The notes beneath the pieces were generated by a model. It was not told where the DNA came from and did no database searches. It saw only the letters and a list, made by a program, of their open reading frames with translations. The position numbers were made by a program, and so were the translations under genes. A stretch of DNA of 64,000 bases from Piromyces finnis finn. Taxonomy: Eukaryota > Fungi > Neocallimastigomycota. The stretch lies in NCBI GenBank assembly GCA_002104945.1, contig MCFH01000055.1:186001-250000 (forward strand), given 5' to 3'. Shown here in pieces: positions 46,442-62,952 of the stretch (positions are counted from its first letter, which is position 1; each line of letters opens with the position of its first letter).

Positions 46442-48795
46442 CTAACAATCTTCAACAAAATCTTCTCTTGCCCAATCGGGTAAACTTGTTTTAAAACTCC
46501 AGGCATCCTCTAAAATGGTTGCATGTGAATTATAATTTTTATTTTCTGATGGCACTTCTTCTCCTGCCTTTGGTTTTTCTTCTTTTTCTTCTCCATCTTC
46601 TCCTTTTTTATTTTCACTCGATAACTGTTCTTCGGTTGTTGAATCAGTGCTACTATTACTTGAGTAAGAGTAAGCATGTAACCAAATACACATTTGATGT
46701 GGTTTTGGATCACTCTTAGGATGAATACAATCATCACAACTTTCAACAAACCATGATGGCTTTTCTTTTTCTTGATTAACATCATTTTGTGATGGATTTT
46801 GATCAGTTTCTTGTTTGTTTTCTGATTCATGGTTTTCTGTAGAAATTGACTTATTAGTATCAGGACATTCTAAATTTGGGAAACCCATTGCCATCATATT
46901 TCCAATGACTTTATCAATGCCTTCTTTATTTACACCGCCTTTACCACATTGTTGACCCCATATATCAGTATTGCAATAAAGAGGGTCATTTGCTATTGGA
47001 TAACCTATTACATGAGAAAAAGCCAACATATATTTGTAAATTTAACATGTTTTTTTTTTTTATTATTTTATTTTATTTTATTTTATTTTATTTTATTTTA
47101 TTTTATTTTATTTTATTTTATTTTATTTTATTTTATTTTATTTTATTTTATTTTATTTTATTTTATTTTATTTTATTTTATTTTATTTTATTTTATTTTA
47201 TTTTATTTTATTTTATTTTATTTTATTTTATTTTATTTTATTTATTTTATTTTATTTTATTTTATTTTATTTTATTTTATTTTATTTTATTTTATTTTAT
47301 TTTATTTTATTTTATTTTATTTTATTTTATTTTATTGGTTTTTTATTTAAATTTTATATATTTATATTTAAAAAGTATAAATATTATATATGTATTCAAA
47401 TATTTACCTAAATATTGTAAGTGAACTCGAATTTGATGGGTTCTTCCTGTTAATGGTTTACCTTTCATATATATATAAATATATATATATAAAAATGAAT
47501 AAATAAATTTTAACAATATAGGATTATCAAAAATACTCACATAATACCAAACTAGTTTTTCCATTAAAATGAAGTTTCTTAAATATTGTAGTGCATGGTT
47601 TTCCATCAGGTGAAACAGAATTTAAACCAAGTTTAAAAGATACAGTTAAAATTGGTTCATTACACACAATTTCTTCACTTTATTATAAAATATATATAAA
47701 TAAAAGTATAAAACTTTTCATAAATAACTACCCTAGATATATTTATATAAGAAGTAGAACTAAAATTGAATTTTAAATCTTACTCTGGAAAATTTCCTAC
47801 AACTCTAGCTAAATATTCTTTAAGAATTGTTTTATGCCTTAAATTATATTCCATTGCTTTTGCCCTTTCTGGATTTAAACAAATAATATTTAGTCCTGAA
47901 GTTAATCTATCTAAACGATTGGATGCTGATCAATGAATATGAATAAATTCCATTTTTATTTTAAAATTTTAAACCGAATTTTTTGAATTGATTTTGAAAA
48001 AGTGATTTTTAAATTATTTAATATATTTATAATAATTACATTTATTAGTATTTAAAGTTACATTACCCAATAAAAAAAGAAAAAGAAAAGAAAAATTAAT
48101 ATAGCAACTTACGATATAATTTTTTATAACCATATTCGTTCATTAAAATGTGTAATACTGTATTATGATTATATCTACCACTTGGATGAACTGGAATAGA
48201 AGAAGGTTTATTAATAATAAGAAAATCATCTGTTTTTTTGACAATTTCAATTTTTTGAGATGTAACTGGAGGTTCATGACGATGAATTGAATGTGACACA
48301 ACATCACCATTCTTTAACAAATAGTCGGGACTAACAATTTTATTATTGACCTTGATTTTTCCTGTTTCAATAGCTTTTTTCTTATTTATTTAAATAATTG
48401 AAATATAATTGAAATATTATAAAATTGAATTTACTAATTATTTTATTTTATTTTATTTTACTTTTTTATTTATTAAATTCTTTACATAATATTCGGGTGT
48501 ATGATCTTGAAATTCTTTACAGAATATACTATATATAGATTTTTCATACCAACGTCCTTTTGTAAATGTTTTGTAGGTAAAAAAGTAAGGTTGAACTTTT
48601 CTTAGCCCTTTTTAGATAATATTATCAGTATATTTTATTATTTTTTATGGTAAAAGAAATAAAGTTGTTTTTTCTTTTTTTTTTTTTTAAATTATACGTA
48701 TATATAAATAAGCAAGTAAAATTACCATTTTCAAAGTAATATTTCGCATTAGAAGGTGGTTCTTCATTATTGATATCTTTATAACTTAGATTTCT
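46442..48795 (-). CDS. RluA-family pseudouridine synthase (Rib2/Pus9/RPUSD2-like), multi-exon; true 5' end slightly upstream and unresolved
   Basis: Exons encode KVQPYFFTYKTF, HRHEPPV, INKPSSIPVHPSGRY, catalytic NRLDRLTSGL, KPLTGRTHQIRVHLQYLG and GYPIANDPLY. Confidence 0.9.
47066..47335. repeat. (TTTTA)n pentanucleotide repeat, about 54 units, in a pseudouridine synthase intron (47005-47407)
   Basis: Read directly; one 4-nt interruption. Confidence 0.97.
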
Positions 48796-49446: not shown

Positions 49447-50526
49447 TTACCAACCAGCAATGTTTTTGTAAACATGAGATTTATCAACATTACCATTAAT
49501 ACCTTTAACAGAACCAGAAGAAGAGTATTGCCAAGCATCATATGAAGAAGTAGATGGACTATTGTTACTGTATTTAGCTACCCAAATGTAAGCACCAGCA
49601 TCAGTTAATTTCTTTAAATCAAGATTATCTCTAAACCAACTTTCAGAAGCGTAAACTCCAGCCTTGTAACCAAGAGCCTTAATCTTTTTAATGAAAGCAA
49701 CAGCACAATTTGTTCTAGTAGTTTTAGATAAACCATCAGCTCTTCCAGTATTACCTGATGCACCAGATAATTCAGAATCCCAAAAGATTGGGAAGTTGTT
49801 AGTCTTACCCTTTAAAAGAGTATTGACAACATAAGTAGCTTCAGCTTCAGCTTCGGCAGTAGTCTTAGCTTGAGTAAAGAAATAATAACCAATCTTTGTT
49901 TTTCCTTTGAAACCATTATAGTGAGTTTCTAAACTATCATCTTTTGCTAAATTACCAGCAGATCCATATCCTCTTATACCACAACGAAGAATAACACCAT
50001 CGATTTCTTTAGCAGCAGCAGCATAGTCAGTAACAACATTCCATTTAGAAAGATCAATAATTTCCTTTTGTTTAAATGTTGTTGGTTTAATAATAGTTGT
50101 AGTCTTCTTAGTGGTAGTTGTCTTTTTGGTAGTAGTAGTAGTCTTTTTAGTAGTAGTAGTCTTTTTAGTAGTAGTAGTTACTTTTGGAACACATAACTTT
50201 ACATTACTACTTCCTGGACATTGATTAGAGTAAAGAGTGTTTGAATTGGTTGGGCATTTGGAAACATTTTTGCAAACACCTGCTTTACTAAGGTTTGTAC
50301 CATTAGTAAGTTGTGTGACTTTCTTAACACAACATAAAATATTAGCTGGATCATTTTTACAATAGCCAGTATAAGTAGTTGCAGTACCTTTTTGACCACT
50401 TGACATTTTACATAAAGATTTATCTATACAAACACCTTCGCCTCCAGGGGCAGTACAAGGATCTTCAACTTTAGCAAGAGCTAATGGTACTAATAAAGTT
50501 AATAAGCATTTTAAATTTAAACGCAT
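49447..50526 (-). CDS. Secreted GH25 muramidase (lysozyme), type A: signal peptide + 2 Cys-rich repeats + Thr/Lys linker + GH25
   Basis: GH25 motifs IIDLSKWN, RCGIRGYG, GYYFFTQA, catalytic FWDSE (DxE), GRADGL, GYKAGVYAS, IWVAKY, AWQYSSSG and GINGNVD. Intronless. Confidence 0.92.
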   Translation of the reverse strand: MRLNLKCLLTLLVPLALAKVEDPCTAPGGEGVCIDKSLCKMSSGQKGTATTYTGYCKNDPANILCCVKKVTQLTNGTNLSKAGVCKNVSKCPTNSNTLYSNQCPGSSNVKLCVPKVTTTTKKTTTTKKTTTTTKKTTTTKKTTTIIKPTTFKQKEIIDLSKWNVVTDYAAAAKEIDGVILRCGIRGYGSAGNLAKDDSLETHYNGFKGKTKIGYYFFTQAKTTAEAEAEATYVVNTLLKGKTNNFPIFWDSELSGASGNTGRADGLSKTTRTNCAVAFIKKIKALGYKAGVYASESWFRDNLDLKKLTDAGAYIWVAKYSNNSPSTSSYDAWQYSSSGSVKGINGNVDKSHVYKNIAGW

Positions 50527-51969: not shown

Positions 51970-53052
51970 TTACCAACCAGCAATGTTTTTGTAAACATGA
52001 GATTTATCAACATTACCATTAATACCTTTAACAGAACCAGAAGAAGTATATTGCCAAGCATCATACGAAGAAGTAGATGGACTACTGCTGCTGTATTTAG
52101 CTACCCAAATGTAAGCACCAGCATCAGTTAATTTCTTTAAATCAAGATTATCTCTAAACCAACTTTCAGAAGCGTAAACTCCAGCCTTGTAACCAAGAGC
52201 CTTAATCTTTTTAATGAAAGCAACAGCACAATTTGTTCTAGTAGTTTTAGATAAACCATCAGCTCTTCCAGTATTACCTGATGCACCAGATAATTCAGAA
52301 TCCCAAAAGATTGGGAAGTTGTTGGTCTTACCCTTTAAAAGAGTATTGACAACATAAGTAGCTTCAGCTTCAGCTTCGGCAGTAGTCTTAGCTTGAGTAA
52401 AGAAATAATAACCAATCTTTGTTTTTCCTTTGAAACCATTATAGTGAGTTTCTAAACTATCATCTTTTGCTAAATTACCAGCAGATCCATATCCTCTTAT
52501 ACCACAACGAAGAATAACACCATCGATTTCTTTAGCGGCTGCTGCATAGTCAGTAACAACATTCCATTGAGAAATATCAATAATTTCCTTTTGTTTAAAT
52601 GTTGTTGGTTTAATAATAGTTGTAGTCTTCTTAGTGGTAGTAGTAGTCTTTTTAATAGTTGTCTTTTTAGTCGTAGTTTTTGATTTTGGTACACATAATT
52701 TAACATTATTAGTTCCTGGGCATTCATAAGTATTAATTAATGTATTAAAAGTTGTTGAACACTTTGAAACATTTAAACAACGACCAGTAGCACCAAGAGC
52801 TTGACCACTTCTAAGTGTAGTAACCTTTTTAATACAACAAATAACATTATCTGGATCATTTGGACATGGCCAATTTGGAGCTGAACCAGCATATTTAATA
52901 GCTGAACCTTTTTGACTACCATACATTATACAATCGGTATCTTTAACACACACACCTTCACCATAGGAACCACCATTACATGGTTGATCAATATAAGCAA
53001 GTGCAGTTGGAACTGCTAATAAACTTAATAAATATTTTATATTAAAATGCAT
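51970..53052 (-). CDS. Secreted GH25 muramidase, type B (different Cys-rich module, near-identical catalytic domain)
   Basis: Same architecture as type A; the catalytic domain differs from A at only about 5 residues; intronless. Confidence 0.92.
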   Translation of the reverse strand: MHFNIKYLLSLLAVPTALAYIDQPCNGGSYGEGVCVKDTDCIMYGSQKGSAIKYAGSAPNWPCPNDPDNVICCIKKVTTLRSGQALGATGRCLNVSKCSTTFNTLINTYECPGTNNVKLCVPKSKTTTKKTTIKKTTTTTKKTTTIIKPTTFKQKEIIDISQWNVVTDYAAAAKEIDGVILRCGIRGYGSAGNLAKDDSLETHYNGFKGKTKIGYYFFTQAKTTAEAEAEATYVVNTLLKGKTNNFPIFWDSELSGASGNTGRADGLSKTTRTNCAVAFIKKIKALGYKAGVYASESWFRDNLDLKKLTDAGAYIWVAKYSSSSPSTSSYDAWQYTSSGSVKGINGNVDKSHVYKNIAGW

Positions 53053-54093: not shown

Positions 54094-54682
54094 ATATATT
54101 TAAAATATTTAAAAATAAATTTAAAACTTAAAAATTAAGAATTTTTAATAAATAAATTAAACAAAACTGAATAAAAATAGGATATAATATATTTTAGTAA
54201 TTTTAATTAAAGTTAAAAGGCCATTATTGCATCTATTACATTAAAACAATAATTAATATTTTACTTTCAATTGGACTTGGCGTCAAAAAAATAAAGTTTT
54301 GTTAGTGGAAAAAATTATGTTCTGCATTGGGTAGTGGGGGAGGGAAAATCCTGTCTTACTGTTTCTTCAGCAATGATATCAATCATATCCTTTCCAATCT
54401 TTTGATATTTAACGATGAAACAATTATATGTTTTTAAACAGTATATACTAAAATCAGGAAATCAAAATAAAACTATTTGAATTTTTATTAAAAAATAAAA
54501 ATGAATATTATTTATTTACATAATAAAATGTAGCAGCTTAAATATTATAAGTCGATTTTAGAGTTATTTATTTTTAATATATTTTATTAATTTAAATATA
54601 TATATATGTAACATATTTATGAAGTTATATTGAATTACTTTTCTATTTTATACATTTTTTTTACATTTTATTTTATTTTATT

Positions 54683-54717
<35 letters not shown>

Positions 54718-55827
54718 GTTATTTTATTATTTTATTATTTTATTGTATTGTATTATTATTAATATTAATAATTTATTTTATTTTATTCAACTTTGTTTTA
54801 TTATATTCTATTTTATTAAATCTACCTTATATACTTTATTTCATTTCATTTTATCTTATTTTATTTCTAATAATTCAGTTTTTAGTTTGGAACACATAAT
54901 TTAACATTATCGCTTCCTGGACATTCGGCGGTATTAACTAAGTAATGATTTTTGGTTGAGCAGTTAGAAACATTTAAACAACGACCAGTCTTCTTAAGTA
55001 CTATTCCACTTTTAAGAGTAGAAACCTTCTTAACACAGCAAATAACATCATCTGGGTCATTTGGACATGGCCATCTTGAAGAAGTACCAGCATATTTATA
55101 AACTGAACCTTTTTGATTACTGTACATTTTACAATCAGAGCTTTTAATACAGACACCTTCACCATGAATAATATCAGTTTTACATGGTTCATCAATGTAA
55201 GCAAGGGCAGCTGGAACGGCTAATAAAGCTAATAAGTATTTTAAGTTGAATTGCATTTTGTAATTTTAATTTTAATTTTTTTTTTTCTTTTTAGTTTATA
55301 TTAATTTTTTAATTATATTTTATTTATTTGATTTGATTTAAAAAAAAAGTTTATTGAAAATTGTTCTTATTTATACTAATTTCGCCATTATTAAATTATA
55401 TTCAAAAAGGTTACTAAAAGTTATTTGATAATATATAAAACTCTTTTAATTTCTATTAAAGTTTAGTTATTTATCAATCACTTATTTTATTTAGTTTCAC
55501 TTATTAATTTCGTTGCTATTATTTTCATAATCTTTAATAATACGGTTAGTATTATTCTACTAATTTCTAATTTTTATAATAAAAAAGTAATTAATGTTAT
55601 TTTATTGTTCTTGTAAGTAAAATAAGTAAAATATACCTAATCAAGAACCTTAAATAATATTCTTTAAACATTAATATTATTTAAAGTTTTGGTAATTGTT
55701 TTTTGTTTGTTTGCTTTGTTTTCTTGTTTATAAGAATAATGTTAACAATTCTTATGAAGATTAATAAAATAATATTAATTAACAGAAGTTAAATAAAATA
55801 AATAATTAATAAATTACCAAACTGAAT
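54094..55827. repeat. Left arm of a 1734-bp near-perfect inverted repeat
   Basis: Mirrored ORF coordinates all sum to 112684 with identical translations. Boundaries were read by eye; one mismatch seen (55812/56872). Confidence 0.93.
54882..55256 (-). CDS. Secreted Cys-rich protein, type C: stand-alone copy of the GH25 N-terminal module without linker or enzyme
   Basis: Signal peptide MQFNLKYLLALLAVPAALA and 10 Cys with the same spacing pattern as types A/B; stops at VKLCVPN*. Confidence 0.85.
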   Translation of the reverse strand: MQFNLKYLLALLAVPAALAYIDEPCKTDIIHGEGVCIKSSDCKMYSNQKGSVYKYAGTSSRWPCPNDPDDVICCVKKVSTLKSGIVLKKTGRCLNVSNCSTKNHYLVNTAECPGSDNVKLCVPN

Positions 55828-56856: not shown

Positions 56857-57966
56857 ATTCAGTTTGGTAATATATTAATTATTTATTTTATTTAACTTCT
56901 GTTAATTAATATTATTTTATTAATCTTCATAAGAATTGTTAACATTATTCTTATAAACAAGAAAACAAAGCAAACAAACAAAAAACAATTACCAAAACTT
57001 TAAATAATATTAATGTTTAAAGAATATTATTTAAGGTTCTTGATTAGGTATATTTTACTTATTTTACTTACAAGAACAATAAAATAACATTAATTACTTT
57101 TTTATTATAAAAATTAGAAATTAGTAGAATAATACTAACCGTATTATTAAAGATTATGAAAATAATAGCAACGAAATTAATAAGTGAAACTAAATAAAAT
57201 AAGTGATTGATAAATAACTAAACTTTAATAGAAATTAAAAGAGTTTTATATATTATCAAATAACTTTTAGTAACCTTTTTGAATATAATTTAATAATGGC
57301 GAAATTAGTATAAATAAGAACAATTTTCAATAAACTTTTTTTTTAAATCAAATCAAATAAATAAAATATAATTAAAAAATTAATATAAACTAAAAAGAAA
57401 AAAAAAAATTAAAATTAAAATTACAAAATGCAATTCAACTTAAAATACTTATTAGCTTTATTAGCCGTTCCAGCTGCCCTTGCTTACATTGATGAACCAT
57501 GTAAAACTGATATTATTCATGGTGAAGGTGTCTGTATTAAAAGCTCTGATTGTAAAATGTACAGTAATCAAAAAGGTTCAGTTTATAAATATGCTGGTAC
57601 TTCTTCAAGATGGCCATGTCCAAATGACCCAGATGATGTTATTTGCTGTGTTAAGAAGGTTTCTACTCTTAAAAGTGGAATAGTACTTAAGAAGACTGGT
57701 CGTTGTTTAAATGTTTCTAACTGCTCAACCAAAAATCATTACTTAGTTAATACCGCCGAATGTCCAGGAAGCGATAATGTTAAATTATGTGTTCCAAACT
57801 AAAAACTGAATTATTAGAAATAAAATAAGATAAAATGAAATGAAATAAAGTATATAAGGTAGATTTAATAAAATAGAATATAATAAAACAAAGTTGAATA
57901 AAATAAAATAAATTATTAATATTAATAATAATACAATACAATAAAATAATAAAATAATAAAATAAC

Positions 57967-58001
<35 letters not shown>

Positions 58002-58590
58002 AATAAAATAAAATAAAATGTAAAAAAAATGTATAAAATAGAAAAGTAATTCAATATAACTTCATAAATATGTTACATATATATATATTTAAATTAATAA
58101 AATATATTAAAAATAAATAACTCTAAAATCGACTTATAATATTTAAGCTGCTACATTTTATTATGTAAATAAATAATATTCATTTTTATTTTTTAATAAA
58201 AATTCAAATAGTTTTATTTTGATTTCCTGATTTTAGTATATACTGTTTAAAAACATATAATTGTTTCATCGTTAAATATCAAAAGATTGGAAAGGATATG
58301 ATTGATATCATTGCTGAAGAAACAGTAAGACAGGATTTTCCCTCCCCCACTACCCAATGCAGAACATAATTTTTTCCACTAACAAAACTTTATTTTTTTG
58401 ACGCCAAGTCCAATTGAAAGTAAAATATTAATTATTGTTTTAATGTAATAGATGCAATAATGGCCTTTTAACTTTAATTAAAATTACTAAAATATATTAT
58501 ATCCTATTTTTATTCAGTTTTGTTTAATTTATTTATTAAAAATTCTTAATTTTTAAGTTTTAAATTTATTTTTAAATATTTTAAATATAT
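56857..58590. repeat. Right arm of the 1734-bp inverted repeat (spacer 55828-56856, 1029 bp)
   Basis: Reverse complement of 54094-55827. Confidence 0.93.
57428..57802 (+). CDS. Secreted Cys-rich protein, type C' (identical inverted copy of 54882-55256)
   Basis: Identical 124-aa translation; transcribed divergently from type C. Confidence 0.85.
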   Translation: MQFNLKYLLALLAVPAALAYIDEPCKTDIIHGEGVCIKSSDCKMYSNQKGSVYKYAGTSSRWPCPNDPDDVICCVKKVSTLKSGIVLKKTGRCLNVSNCSTKNHYLVNTAECPGSDNVKLCVPN

Positions 58591-59120: not shown

Positions 59121-60200
59121 TTACCAACCAGCAATGTTTTTGTAAACATGAGATTTATCAACATTACCATTAATACCTTTAACAGAACCAGAAGAAGAGT
59201 ATTGCCAAGCATCATATGAAGAAGTAGATGGACTATTGTTACTGTATTTAGCTACCCAAATGTAAGCACCAGCATCAGTTAATTTCTTTAAATCAAGATT
59301 ATCTCTAAACCAACTTTCAGAAGCGTAAACTCCAGCCTTGTAACCAAGAGCCTTAATCTTTTTAATGAAAGCAACAGCACAATTTGTTCTAGTAGTTTTA
59401 GATAAACCATCAGCTCTTCCAGTATTACCTGATGCACCAGATAATTCAGAATCCCAAAAGATTGGGAAGTTGTTAGTCTTACCCTTTAAAAGAGTATTGA
59501 CAACATAAGTAGCTTCAGCTTCAGCTTCGGCAGTAGTCTTAGCTTGAGTAAAGAAGTAATAACCAATCTTTGTTTTTCCTTTGAAACCATTATAGTGAGT
59601 TTCTAATTTATCATCCTTTGCTAATGAACCAGAAGAGCCATATCCTCTATAACCACAACGAAGGATAACACCATCGATTTCTTTAGCAGCAGCAGAATAA
59701 TCATTAACAACATTCCATTTAGAAAGATCAATAATTTCCTTTTGTTTAAATGTTGTTGGTTTAATAATAGTTGTAGCCTTCTTAGTGGTAGTTGTCTTTT
59801 TGGTAGTAGTAGTAGTCTTTTTAGTAGTAGTAGTCTTTTTAGTAGTAGTAGTTACTTTTGGAACACATAACTTTACATTACTACTTCCTGGACATTGATT
59901 AGAGTAAAGAGTGTTTGAATTGGTTGGGCATTTGGAAACATTTTTGCAAACACCTGCTTTACTAAGGTTTGTACCATTAGTAAGTTGTGTGACTTTCTTA
60001 ACACAACATAAAATATTAGCTGGATCATTTTTACAATAGCCAGTATAAGTAGTTGCAGTACCTTTTTGACCACTTGACATTTTACATAAAGATTTATCTA
60101 TACAAACACCTTCGCCTCCAGGGGCAGTACAAGGATCTTCAACTTTAGCAAGAGCTAATGGTACTAATAAAGTTAATAAGCATTTTAAATTTAAACGCAT
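59121..60200 (-). CDS. Secreted GH25 muramidase, type A' (paralog of 49447-50526)
   Basis: Identical to A except 7 residues: one in the linker and six clustered at the start of the GH25 domain (NDYS...GYRGYGSSGSLAKDDK). Confidence 0.92.
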   Translation of the reverse strand: MRLNLKCLLTLLVPLALAKVEDPCTAPGGEGVCIDKSLCKMSSGQKGTATTYTGYCKNDPANILCCVKKVTQLTNGTNLSKAGVCKNVSKCPTNSNTLYSNQCPGSSNVKLCVPKVTTTTKKTTTTKKTTTTTKKTTTTKKATTIIKPTTFKQKEIIDLSKWNVVNDYSAAAKEIDGVILRCGYRGYGSSGSLAKDDKLETHYNGFKGKTKIGYYFFTQAKTTAEAEAEATYVVNTLLKGKTNNFPIFWDSELSGASGNTGRADGLSKTTRTNCAVAFIKKIKALGYKAGVYASESWFRDNLDLKKLTDAGAYIWVAKYSNNSPSTSSYDAWQYSSSGSVKGINGNVDKSHVYKNIAGW

Positions 60201-61869: not shown

Positions 61870-62952
61870 TTACCAACCAGCAATGTTTTTGTAAACATGA
61901 GATTTATCAACATTACCATTAATACCTTTAACAGAACCAGAAGAAGTATATTGCCAAGCATCATACGAAGAAGTAGATGGACTACTGCTGCTGTATTTAG
62001 CTACCCAAATGTAAGCACCAGCATCAGTTAATTTCTTTAAATCAAGATTATCTCTAAACCAACTTTCAGAAGCGTAAACTCCAGCCTTGTAACCAAGAGC
62101 CTTAATCTTTTTAATGAAAGCAACAGCACAATTTGTTCTAGTAGTTTTAGATAAACCATCAGCTCTTCCAGTATTACCTGATGCACCAGATAATTCAGAA
62201 TCCCAAAAGATTGGGAAATTGTTGGTCTTACCCTTTAAAAGAGTATTGACAACATAAGTAGCTTCAGCTTCAGCTTCGGCAGTAGTCTTAGCTTGAGTAA
62301 AGAAATAATAACCAATCTTTGTTTTTCCTTTGAAACCATTATAGTGAGTTTCTAAACTATCATCTTTTGCTAAATTACCAGCAGATCCATATCCTCTTAT
62401 ACCACAACGAAGAATAACACCATCGATTTCTTTAGCAGCAGCAGCATAGTCAGTAACAACATTCCATTGAGAAATATCAATAATTTCCTTTTGTTTAAAT
62501 GTTGTTGGTTTAATAATAGTTGTAGTCTTCTTAGTGGTAGTAGTAGTCTTTTTAATAGTTGTCTTTTTAGTCGTAGTTTTTGATTTTGGTACACATAATT
62601 TAACATTATTAGTTCCTGGGCATTCATAAGTATTAATTAATGTATTAAAAGTTGTTGAACACTTTGAAACATTTAAACAACGACCAGTAGCACCAAGAGC
62701 TTGACCACTTCTAAGTGTAGTAACCTTTTTAATACAACAAATAACATTATCTGGATCATTTGGACATGGCCAATTTGGAGCTGAACCAGCATATTTAATA
62801 GCTGAACCTTTTTGACTACCATACATTATACAATCGGTATCTTTAACACAGACACCTTCACCATAGGAACCACCATTACATGGTTGATCAATATAAGCAA
62901 GTGCAGTTGGAACTGCTAATAAACTTAATAAATATTTTATATTAAAATGCAT
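61870..62952 (-). CDS. Secreted GH25 muramidase, type B' (paralog of 51970-53052)
   Basis: Protein identical to B; the few nucleotide differences seen are synonymous. Confidence 0.92.
   Translation of the reverse strand: MHFNIKYLLSLLAVPTALAYIDQPCNGGSYGEGVCVKDTDCIMYGSQKGSAIKYAGSAPNWPCPNDPDNVICCIKKVTTLRSGQALGATGRCLNVSKCSTTFNTLINTYECPGTNNVKLCVPKSKTTTKKTTIKKTTTTTKKTTTIIKPTTFKQKEIIDISQWNVVTDYAAAAKEIDGVILRCGIRGYGSAGNLAKDDSLETHYNGFKGKTKIGYYFFTQAKTTAEAEAEATYVVNTLLKGKTNNFPIFWDSELSGASGNTGRADGLSKTTRTNCAVAFIKKIKALGYKAGVYASESWFRDNLDLKKLTDAGAYIWVAKYSSSSPSTSSYDAWQYTSSGSVKGINGNVDKSHVYKNIAGW

Follow-up and report, generated by a model that had tools for sequence, protein, structure and literature searches.

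A cysteine-rich two-unit module with a predicted beta-defensin-like fold on secreted lysozymes of the anaerobic fungus Piromyces finnis

Within a window of 64,000 nt from the anaerobic gut fungus Piromyces finnis, we studied the segment at 50205-50460, which lies on the minus strand inside gene A (49447..50526, minus strand), an intronless 359-aa open reading frame (ORF) for a secreted GH25 lysozyme with an N-terminal ten-cysteine module. As judged by alignment, this module derives from a pan-fungal two-unit domain by the loss of one Cys pair, and the beta-defensin (trans-defensin) fold is predicted for its six-Cys unit. We favor, at a probability of roughly 0.6, the reading that the module is the rigid, disulfide-locked N-terminal part of secreted antibacterial enzymes and would target them to the bacterial envelope.

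The protein encoded by gene A begins with a signal peptide (50470..50526; residues ~1-19), recognized in the translation as a hydrophobic N terminus ending in 'ALA', with an inferred cleavage site. It is followed by the Cys module (50185-50463; residues 22-114), a Thr/Lys-rich linker, also read from the translation (50077..50184; residues 115-150), and the GH25 catalytic domain (49498..50058), all on the minus strand. The Pfam family Glyco_hydro_25 (PF01183) matched residues 157-343 with an E value of 1.2e-21, covering profile positions 1-180 of 180, and the translation of this domain contains the motifs 'IDLS' and 'WDSE'. Five further genes in the window (B, C, C', A', and B') share A's module. 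In the protein encoded by gene B the GH25 profile is likewise matched at full length (79.9 bits, and 78.3 bits for A, against a curated cut-off of 27).

In all six genes the module is 93-101 aa long, stands behind the signal peptide, and contains ten invariant Cys. A script count placed these at residues 24, 33, 39, 56, 65, 66/85, 91, 103, and 112 in A; 25, 35, 41, 63, 72, 73/92, 98, 111, and 120 in B; and 25, 36, 42, 64, 73, 74/93, 99, 112, and 121 in C. Repeat 1 of A (50320..50463, minus strand), the unit with the predicted beta-defensin-like fold, has six Cys in the order C-x8-C-x5-C-x16-C-x8-CC; the pattern common to A, B, and C is C-x8/9/10-C-x5-C-x16/21-C-x8-CC, with the second Cys always in G-V-C. 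Repeat 2 (50185..50319, minus strand, in A) is a four-Cys unit in which C1 is absent and C5 is Leu, and reads G-x-C-x5-C-x11/12-C-P-G-x6-C in the three proteins. The spacings that an earlier note on this DNA had given for the two repeats, and the GxC it had placed at the second Cys of A, B, and C, were reproduced exactly. All 10 of the 10 Cys are also invariant across 12 paralogous modules of the P. finnis genome. The modules of A, B, and C carry a net charge of +3 to +6, with 0 to -2 in repeat 1 and +5 to +6 in repeat 2; in A, the +6 of repeat 2 makes up most of the positive charge.

Alignment of the repeat-1 columns with the repeat-2 columns by hhalign gave a probability of 81.7% (P = 1.1e-5). 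The two GxC motifs coincide in it, C3 faces the next Cys, C4 faces the CPG Cys, and 'LCC' lies opposite 'KLC', which indicates that C5 became Leu in repeat 2; C1 of repeat 1 had no counterpart. Repeat 2 is thus a copy of repeat 1, the pattern being above chance. The module was then set against the 12-Cys domain found in Mycena, Favolaschia, Serendipita, and Tuber, and aligned with it end to end (hhalign probability 98.7%, E = 3.9e-16, 83 columns). In unit 2 of the 12-Cys domain, one Cys stands opposite the Thr of A's 'KKVTQ' and another opposite the Leu of A's 'VKLC'. Since this outgroup retains both Cys, the ten-Cys form arose by the loss of exactly that pair, and the earlier note's description of repeat 2 as lacking C1 and carrying Leu at C5 is borne out by both alignments. 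Of 380 unit matches that were counted, 263 had six Cys and 44 lacked C1 and had Leu for C5. No other recurrent loss of a Cys pair was seen among the 380 units; the other classes that were checked proved to be broken genes or artefacts of spacing or of alignment edges. Provided that all Cys are bonded, the disappearance of C1 together with C5 implies that the two formed a disulfide. The joint loss in unit 2, which represents one evolutionary event only, supports the C1-C5 bond.

Beta-defensin folds have C1-C5, C2-C4, and C3-C6 connectivity and a GxC motif, and the loss of C1 together with C5 fits the C1-C5 bonding of this topology. To this, structure prediction adds a model of the whole module, obtained with AlphaFold2 from a 36-row alignment (pLDDT 94.2, pTM 0.82). 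The order of elements is the same in both halves of the model: first comes a long strand with GxC at its end, then a one-turn helix preceding the next Cys after GxC, then a short strand that leads to the fourth Cys, and last a strand with CC or LC. In unit 1 this last strand is prolonged and pairs with the opening strand of unit 2, and the two units would thereby form one rigid body.

A VIA-align structure search of 48,161 chains with the six-Cys unit returned seven matches: helianthamide (4x0n_B, score 3.2, with an rmsd of 2.3 Å over 37 residues and 24% identity), the sea-anemone toxin Sh1 (2sh1, 2.7), APETx1 (1wqk, 2.4), residues 33-72 of Cypridina luciferase (24nk, 2.4), human beta-defensin 4 (5ki9, 2.3), an unrelated oxidase (7exs, 2.2), and the C-domain of oyster big defensin (6qbk, 2.1). 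Five of the seven belong to one fold class, the beta-defensin (trans-defensin) fold. Identity in the superpositions was 22-24% over 35-37 residues for three of these five and 15-19% for the other two. The predicted unit thus has a three-stranded antiparallel sheet that superposes on solved beta-defensin-fold structures, and repeat 1 of A, B, and C has the six-Cys framework with adjacent C5 and C6 and GxC. It shares with human beta-defensin 4, oyster big defensin, Sh1, APETx1, and helianthamide the order of the six Cys with adjacent C5C6, GxC at both C2 and C4, and the order of strands. We infer the C2-C4 and C3-C6 bonds from the superposition only.

There are also differences. The loops of fungal repeat 1 are longer than in beta-defensins (x16-21 between C3 and C4), its C1 lies in a strand in the model, and the unit occurs as a domain within larger enzymes and not as a processed free peptide. 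In solved beta-defensins a short N-terminal helix is found at C1. Several observations weigh against the assignment. Repeat 1 is neutral to slightly acidic, whereas typical beta-defensins are cationic. The whole two-repeat model matched nothing in the PDB by Foldseek or VIA-align, the tick carboxypeptidase inhibitor included. Defensin_beta and related Pfam profiles gave no match at E values up to 1 for whole proteins and up to 10 for single units, and neither did Clip and toxin sequence profiles. Moreover, with a Cys framework of this kind, AlphaFold2 predictions may lean towards folds that are already known. Because the structural matches come without sequence-profile matches, the resemblance to beta-defensins is structural only.

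These results bear on the alternative that the resemblance to the beta-defensins of animals arose by convergence or is in part a product of modelling, the unit being a fungus-specific disulfide-rich mini-fold that shares no ancestor with trans-defensins and in which the four remaining Cys might be bonded otherwise. We consider it unlikely, given that the Cys order with adjacent C5C6 is the same, GxC occurs at both C2 and C4, the co-loss of C1 and C5 fits the beta-defensin topology, and five of the seven structural matches fall in a single fold class, with identities of 15-24% in the superpositions. As a prediction, the tandem beta-defensin fold of the earlier note is supported, the five defensin-fold matches having been obtained with the unit and none with the two-repeat body.

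Other searches were not informative. Foldseek found nothing significant in the PDB for either model, and re-alignment of its two chains added nothing. PDB sequence searches, whether started from a single sequence or from a profile of the unit, returned chance matches only (ThreeFoil and a CCCH zinc finger), and the ESM Atlas held no usable match for the module. Among known architectures we considered the Clip domains of arthropod serine proteases, six-Cys units with GxC and CC and C1-C5/C2-C4/C3-C6 bonds that are placed N-terminal to the catalytic domain; the Pfam Clip profile (PF12032) did not match, and no Clip structure was among the VIA-align matches. The tick carboxypeptidase inhibitor consists of two beta-defensin-like domains in tandem and so resembles the fungal module in concept, with a pair of beta-defensin-fold units on a single chain. 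Its tandem was recovered by no search, and the whole two-unit body could not be superposed on it. SH3-like, carbohydrate-binding (CBM), and fungal dockerin (CBM10) folds, which the earlier note had named beforehand as rivals, did not appear among the matches of the structure searches.

A profile search of 1.84 billion representative proteins recovered only 58 relatives at E <= 0.001. Close relatives occur in anaerobic fungi (Anaeromyces, Neocallimastix) and in metagenome assemblies. More distant ones are found in Dikarya, in Mycena and Paracoccidioides by the profile search and in Favolaschia, Serendipita, Tuber, and Lasiodiplodia by a word search. The Dikarya relatives have the six-Cys unit, usually two in tandem, giving 12 Cys in ~100 aa, and the P. 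finnis genome itself contains 12-Cys paralogues, fused to NlpC/P60. The unit consensus is C-x5..10-GxC-x5-C-x8..21-GxC-x6..8-CC, and no Pfam family covers the unit when either the module or single units are searched. These comparisons suggest that the ancestral form is the 12-Cys two-unit domain of Neocallimastigomycota, Basidiomycota, and Ascomycota, and that in the lineage of the window the C1-C5 disulfide was lost from unit 2 and extra residues were inserted between C3 and C4 of unit 1. Arrays of the unit reach 14 or more matched units; a 1,244-aa protein, from a cluster that includes a Neocallimastix californiae entry, has 14 of them followed by a C39-like peptidase.

Three further observations concern this family. 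In two loci of contig C146 of the P. finnis genome, a single compact unit, C-x8-C-x5-C-x8-C-x7-CC, stands between a ten-Cys module and Phage_lysozyme2 (L018:1765-1881 and L019:1744-1860), and this compact unit recurs in the proteins P0012, P0016, and P0025. One protein labelled as coming from a Bacteroidaceae metagenome-assembled genome (MAG; P0123) is 68% identical to the fungal two-unit domain and probably represents a fungal contig binned into a bacterial MAG. Four Dikarya proteins (P0079, P0086, P0090, and P0135) have two units and a C-terminal domain that ends in 'HWDHVHVSF' and bears the precomputed label PF26571.

The module is placed after the signal peptide and before a low-complexity linker and a partner domain. 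Besides GH25, the partners comprise about ten other kinds of wall-hydrolase domain. Partners with a Pfam match above the cut-off or a precomputed label are GH25, GH24, Phage_lysozyme2, GH73, NlpC/P60, and Peptidase_M15_3. GH24, a phage-type lysozyme, is joined to the module at six P. finnis loci (L009-L013 and L017), and the GH73 glucosaminidase occurs together with NlpC/P60 and a chitin-binding domain; NlpC/P60 is also a partner on its own. Papain-like C39/C70 and PPPDE-like partners in the P. finnis genome were seen as sub-threshold Pfam matches only, and a GH108-like partner rests on a source name. An unnamed C-terminal partner of ~300 aa (L014:1396-2694 and L016:1396-2700, on contigs C46 and C192 of the P. 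finnis genome; also in P0008 and P0010) has no Pfam match and recurs in other anaerobic-fungal proteins. Stand-alone modules are encoded by C and C' and found in several metagenomic proteins. In structural terms, the defensin-lysozyme fusion proposed in the earlier note holds, as a module of predicted defensin fold joined to a GH25 lysozyme.

The six genes of the window form a cluster of three genes and their copies. Gene B (51970..53052, minus strand; module at 52687-52986) encodes 360 aa with the same architecture as A. Gene C (54882..55256, minus strand; module at 54888-55190) encodes 124 aa consisting of a signal peptide and the module only. Gene C' (57428..57802, plus strand; module at 57494-57796) is identical to C and lies in the opposite arm of an inverted repeat. 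Gene A' (59121..60200, minus strand; module at 59859-60137) is a copy of A with seven amino acid differences, none in the module, and gene B' (61870..62952, minus strand; module at 62587-62886) is a copy of B with an identical protein. The inverted repeat that contains C and C' is perfect (100%) over 1,734 nt (54094-55827 and 56857-58590, with a spacer of 1,029 nt) and is either a very recent inverted duplication or else an assembly artefact. Gene C stops directly after 'LCVPN', with AT-rich non-coding DNA beyond. At 54860-54905, ~15 nt after C's 'LCVP' resemble the start of B's Thr/Lys linker before the stop, and this, together with the AT-rich DNA that follows, fits gene C being a truncated B-like gene. 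The window as a whole is very AT-rich (13-29% G+C). Upstream of the cluster, the ORF fragments at 46442-48320 (minus strand) look like an intron-split gene resembling, from the translations only, an RluA-type pseudouridine synthase, and a long AT-rich simple repeat of pentanucleotide type lies at ~47000-47350.

Comparison of A with B gave a DNA identity of 98.1% in GH25, 92% in the linker, and 73% in the signal peptide and module; the modules alone are 52.6% identical in protein sequence. This mosaic suggests that the 3' part underwent gene conversion or that modules were exchanged, and A and B would thus combine a constant enzyme with a front end that is diverging fast or has been exchanged. 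A diverging module on a near-identical GH25 domain is as expected of a variable targeting part on a constant enzyme.

The closest described system is that of Coprinopsis cinerea, which has ten 12-Cys defensin-like proteins (DLP1-10) and five GH24 lysozymes (LYS1-5) with the same domain (Kombrink et al., 2019, PMC6461984). Bacteria induce five of the ten stand-alone DLP genes and also some of the lysozyme genes, and the secretome contained several of the DLP and lysozyme proteins (PMC6461984). Attempts to obtain the DLPs for assays did not succeed, and the domain was modelled with Phyre2 as a helix and two strands and likened to copsin-type (CS-alpha-beta) defensins (PMC6461984). The P. finnis proteins resemble these in having a ~100-aa secreted Cys-rich domain, alone or joined by a linker N-terminal to a lysozyme, in expanded families; they differ in that the modules of the window have 10 Cys and not 12, the enzyme is GH25, and the genome contains many other partners. 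Homology of the window's modules to the ~100-aa secreted 12-Cys domain of Agaricomycetes was found with hhalign, and some of the Agaricales 12-Cys relatives bear the source names 'GH24 protein' or 'Lysozyme'. Word searches of proteins brought up no C. cinerea protein; the matching description and the names of the Agaricales relatives fit a link to the C. cinerea proteins, which are set beside ours by description only.

The proposed envelope recognition on a beta-defensin-like scaffold is suggested by the strict association of the module with wall hydrolases of unrelated folds, its N-terminal, linker-joined placement, and the multi-unit arrays. The secreted cationic module, with its charge mostly in unit 2, and the Lys-rich linker would bind some part of the bacterial envelope that is anionic or conserved (peptidoglycan, lipid II, and teichoic acids are candidates), and this binding would concentrate the attached wall hydrolase on its target. 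The module-only proteins C and C' may act as free defensin-like binders or antimicrobials, and the module possibly has an antibacterial role. In its promiscuous attachment to peptidoglycan hydrolases, tandem arrays, and linkers, the module is comparable to the cell-wall-binding modules LysM, SH3b, and PG_binding; these are unrelated in fold and sequence to the fungal module, whose own binding is putative.

Two considerations tell against the favored reading. The rumen is strongly reducing, and disulfides may not persist there outside the cell. Removal of the defensin-like domain from Coprinopsis LYS2 left lysis of B. subtilis and M. luteus in vitro unchanged, and the function of the domain was left open (PMC6461984); if the two families are the same, this speaks against binding being indispensable in that assay.

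The same data can be read as pointing to a defensin in the functional sense, an independent effector that permeabilises membranes or sequesters lipid II beside the lysozyme and does no targeting. The beta-defensin-fold matches, the net positive charge, the identical stand-alone genes C and C', and the ten stand-alone DLP genes of Coprinopsis, of which bacteria induce five and several have products in the secretome (PMC6461984), all agree with this. Yet arrays of at least 14 units and about ten kinds of catalytic partner are typical of binding repeats, and the charge is modest and confined to unit 2; hence, we regard an independent effector as possible but clearly less probable than recognition of the envelope. 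A role unrelated to targeting is very unlikely in our view. The module would then assist secretion into the rumen, as a stabiliser resistant to proteases or as an aid to folding, or else be an inhibitor or decoy, similar to the beta-defensin-fold inhibitor helianthamide and directed, for example, at bacterial proteases or lysozyme inhibitors. The strict association with peptidoglycan hydrolases of unrelated folds, the module's rapid divergence alongside an almost identical enzyme, and the multi-unit arrays fit target recognition better than stabilisation.

A defensin-like domain on a fungal lysozyme is already known from the Coprinopsis GH24 proteins (PMC6461984). In PMC5234102 and PMC8877149, trans-defensins are known from animals only, and the defensins of fungi are assigned to the cis (CS-alpha-beta) superfamily. 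We found no prior description of the present proteins in the literature on anaerobic fungi with lysozyme, GH25, or defensin, and none of a beta-defensin-like fold in fungal secreted proteins. What is new is the predicted beta-defensin fold, the unit and the relationship between its 12-Cys and 10-Cys forms, the breadth of partners, and the GH25 fusions of anaerobic fungi. Homology of the fungal unit to animal defensins, as opposed to convergence, is improbable on present evidence. Just as speculative is the thought that the beta-defensin fold was not an animal invention, and that a homologous six-Cys unit served in a fungal, perhaps opisthokont, ancestor as the envelope-recognition module of secreted peptidoglycan hydrolases, with the free beta- and big defensins of animals and the fungal DLPs as its released descendants.

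A confidently modelled beta-defensin-like unit across three fungal phyla would widen the known range of the fold and would give the debate on the origin of defensins a concrete test object. It would also re-label the domain called 'defensin-like' in the Coprinopsis lysozymes. The natural 12-Cys/10-Cys pair would provide a ready-made experiment on the contribution of one disulfide. Finally, a compact, swappable module on the natural antibacterial enzymes of a rumen fungus would be relevant to rumen ecology and to engineered lysins.
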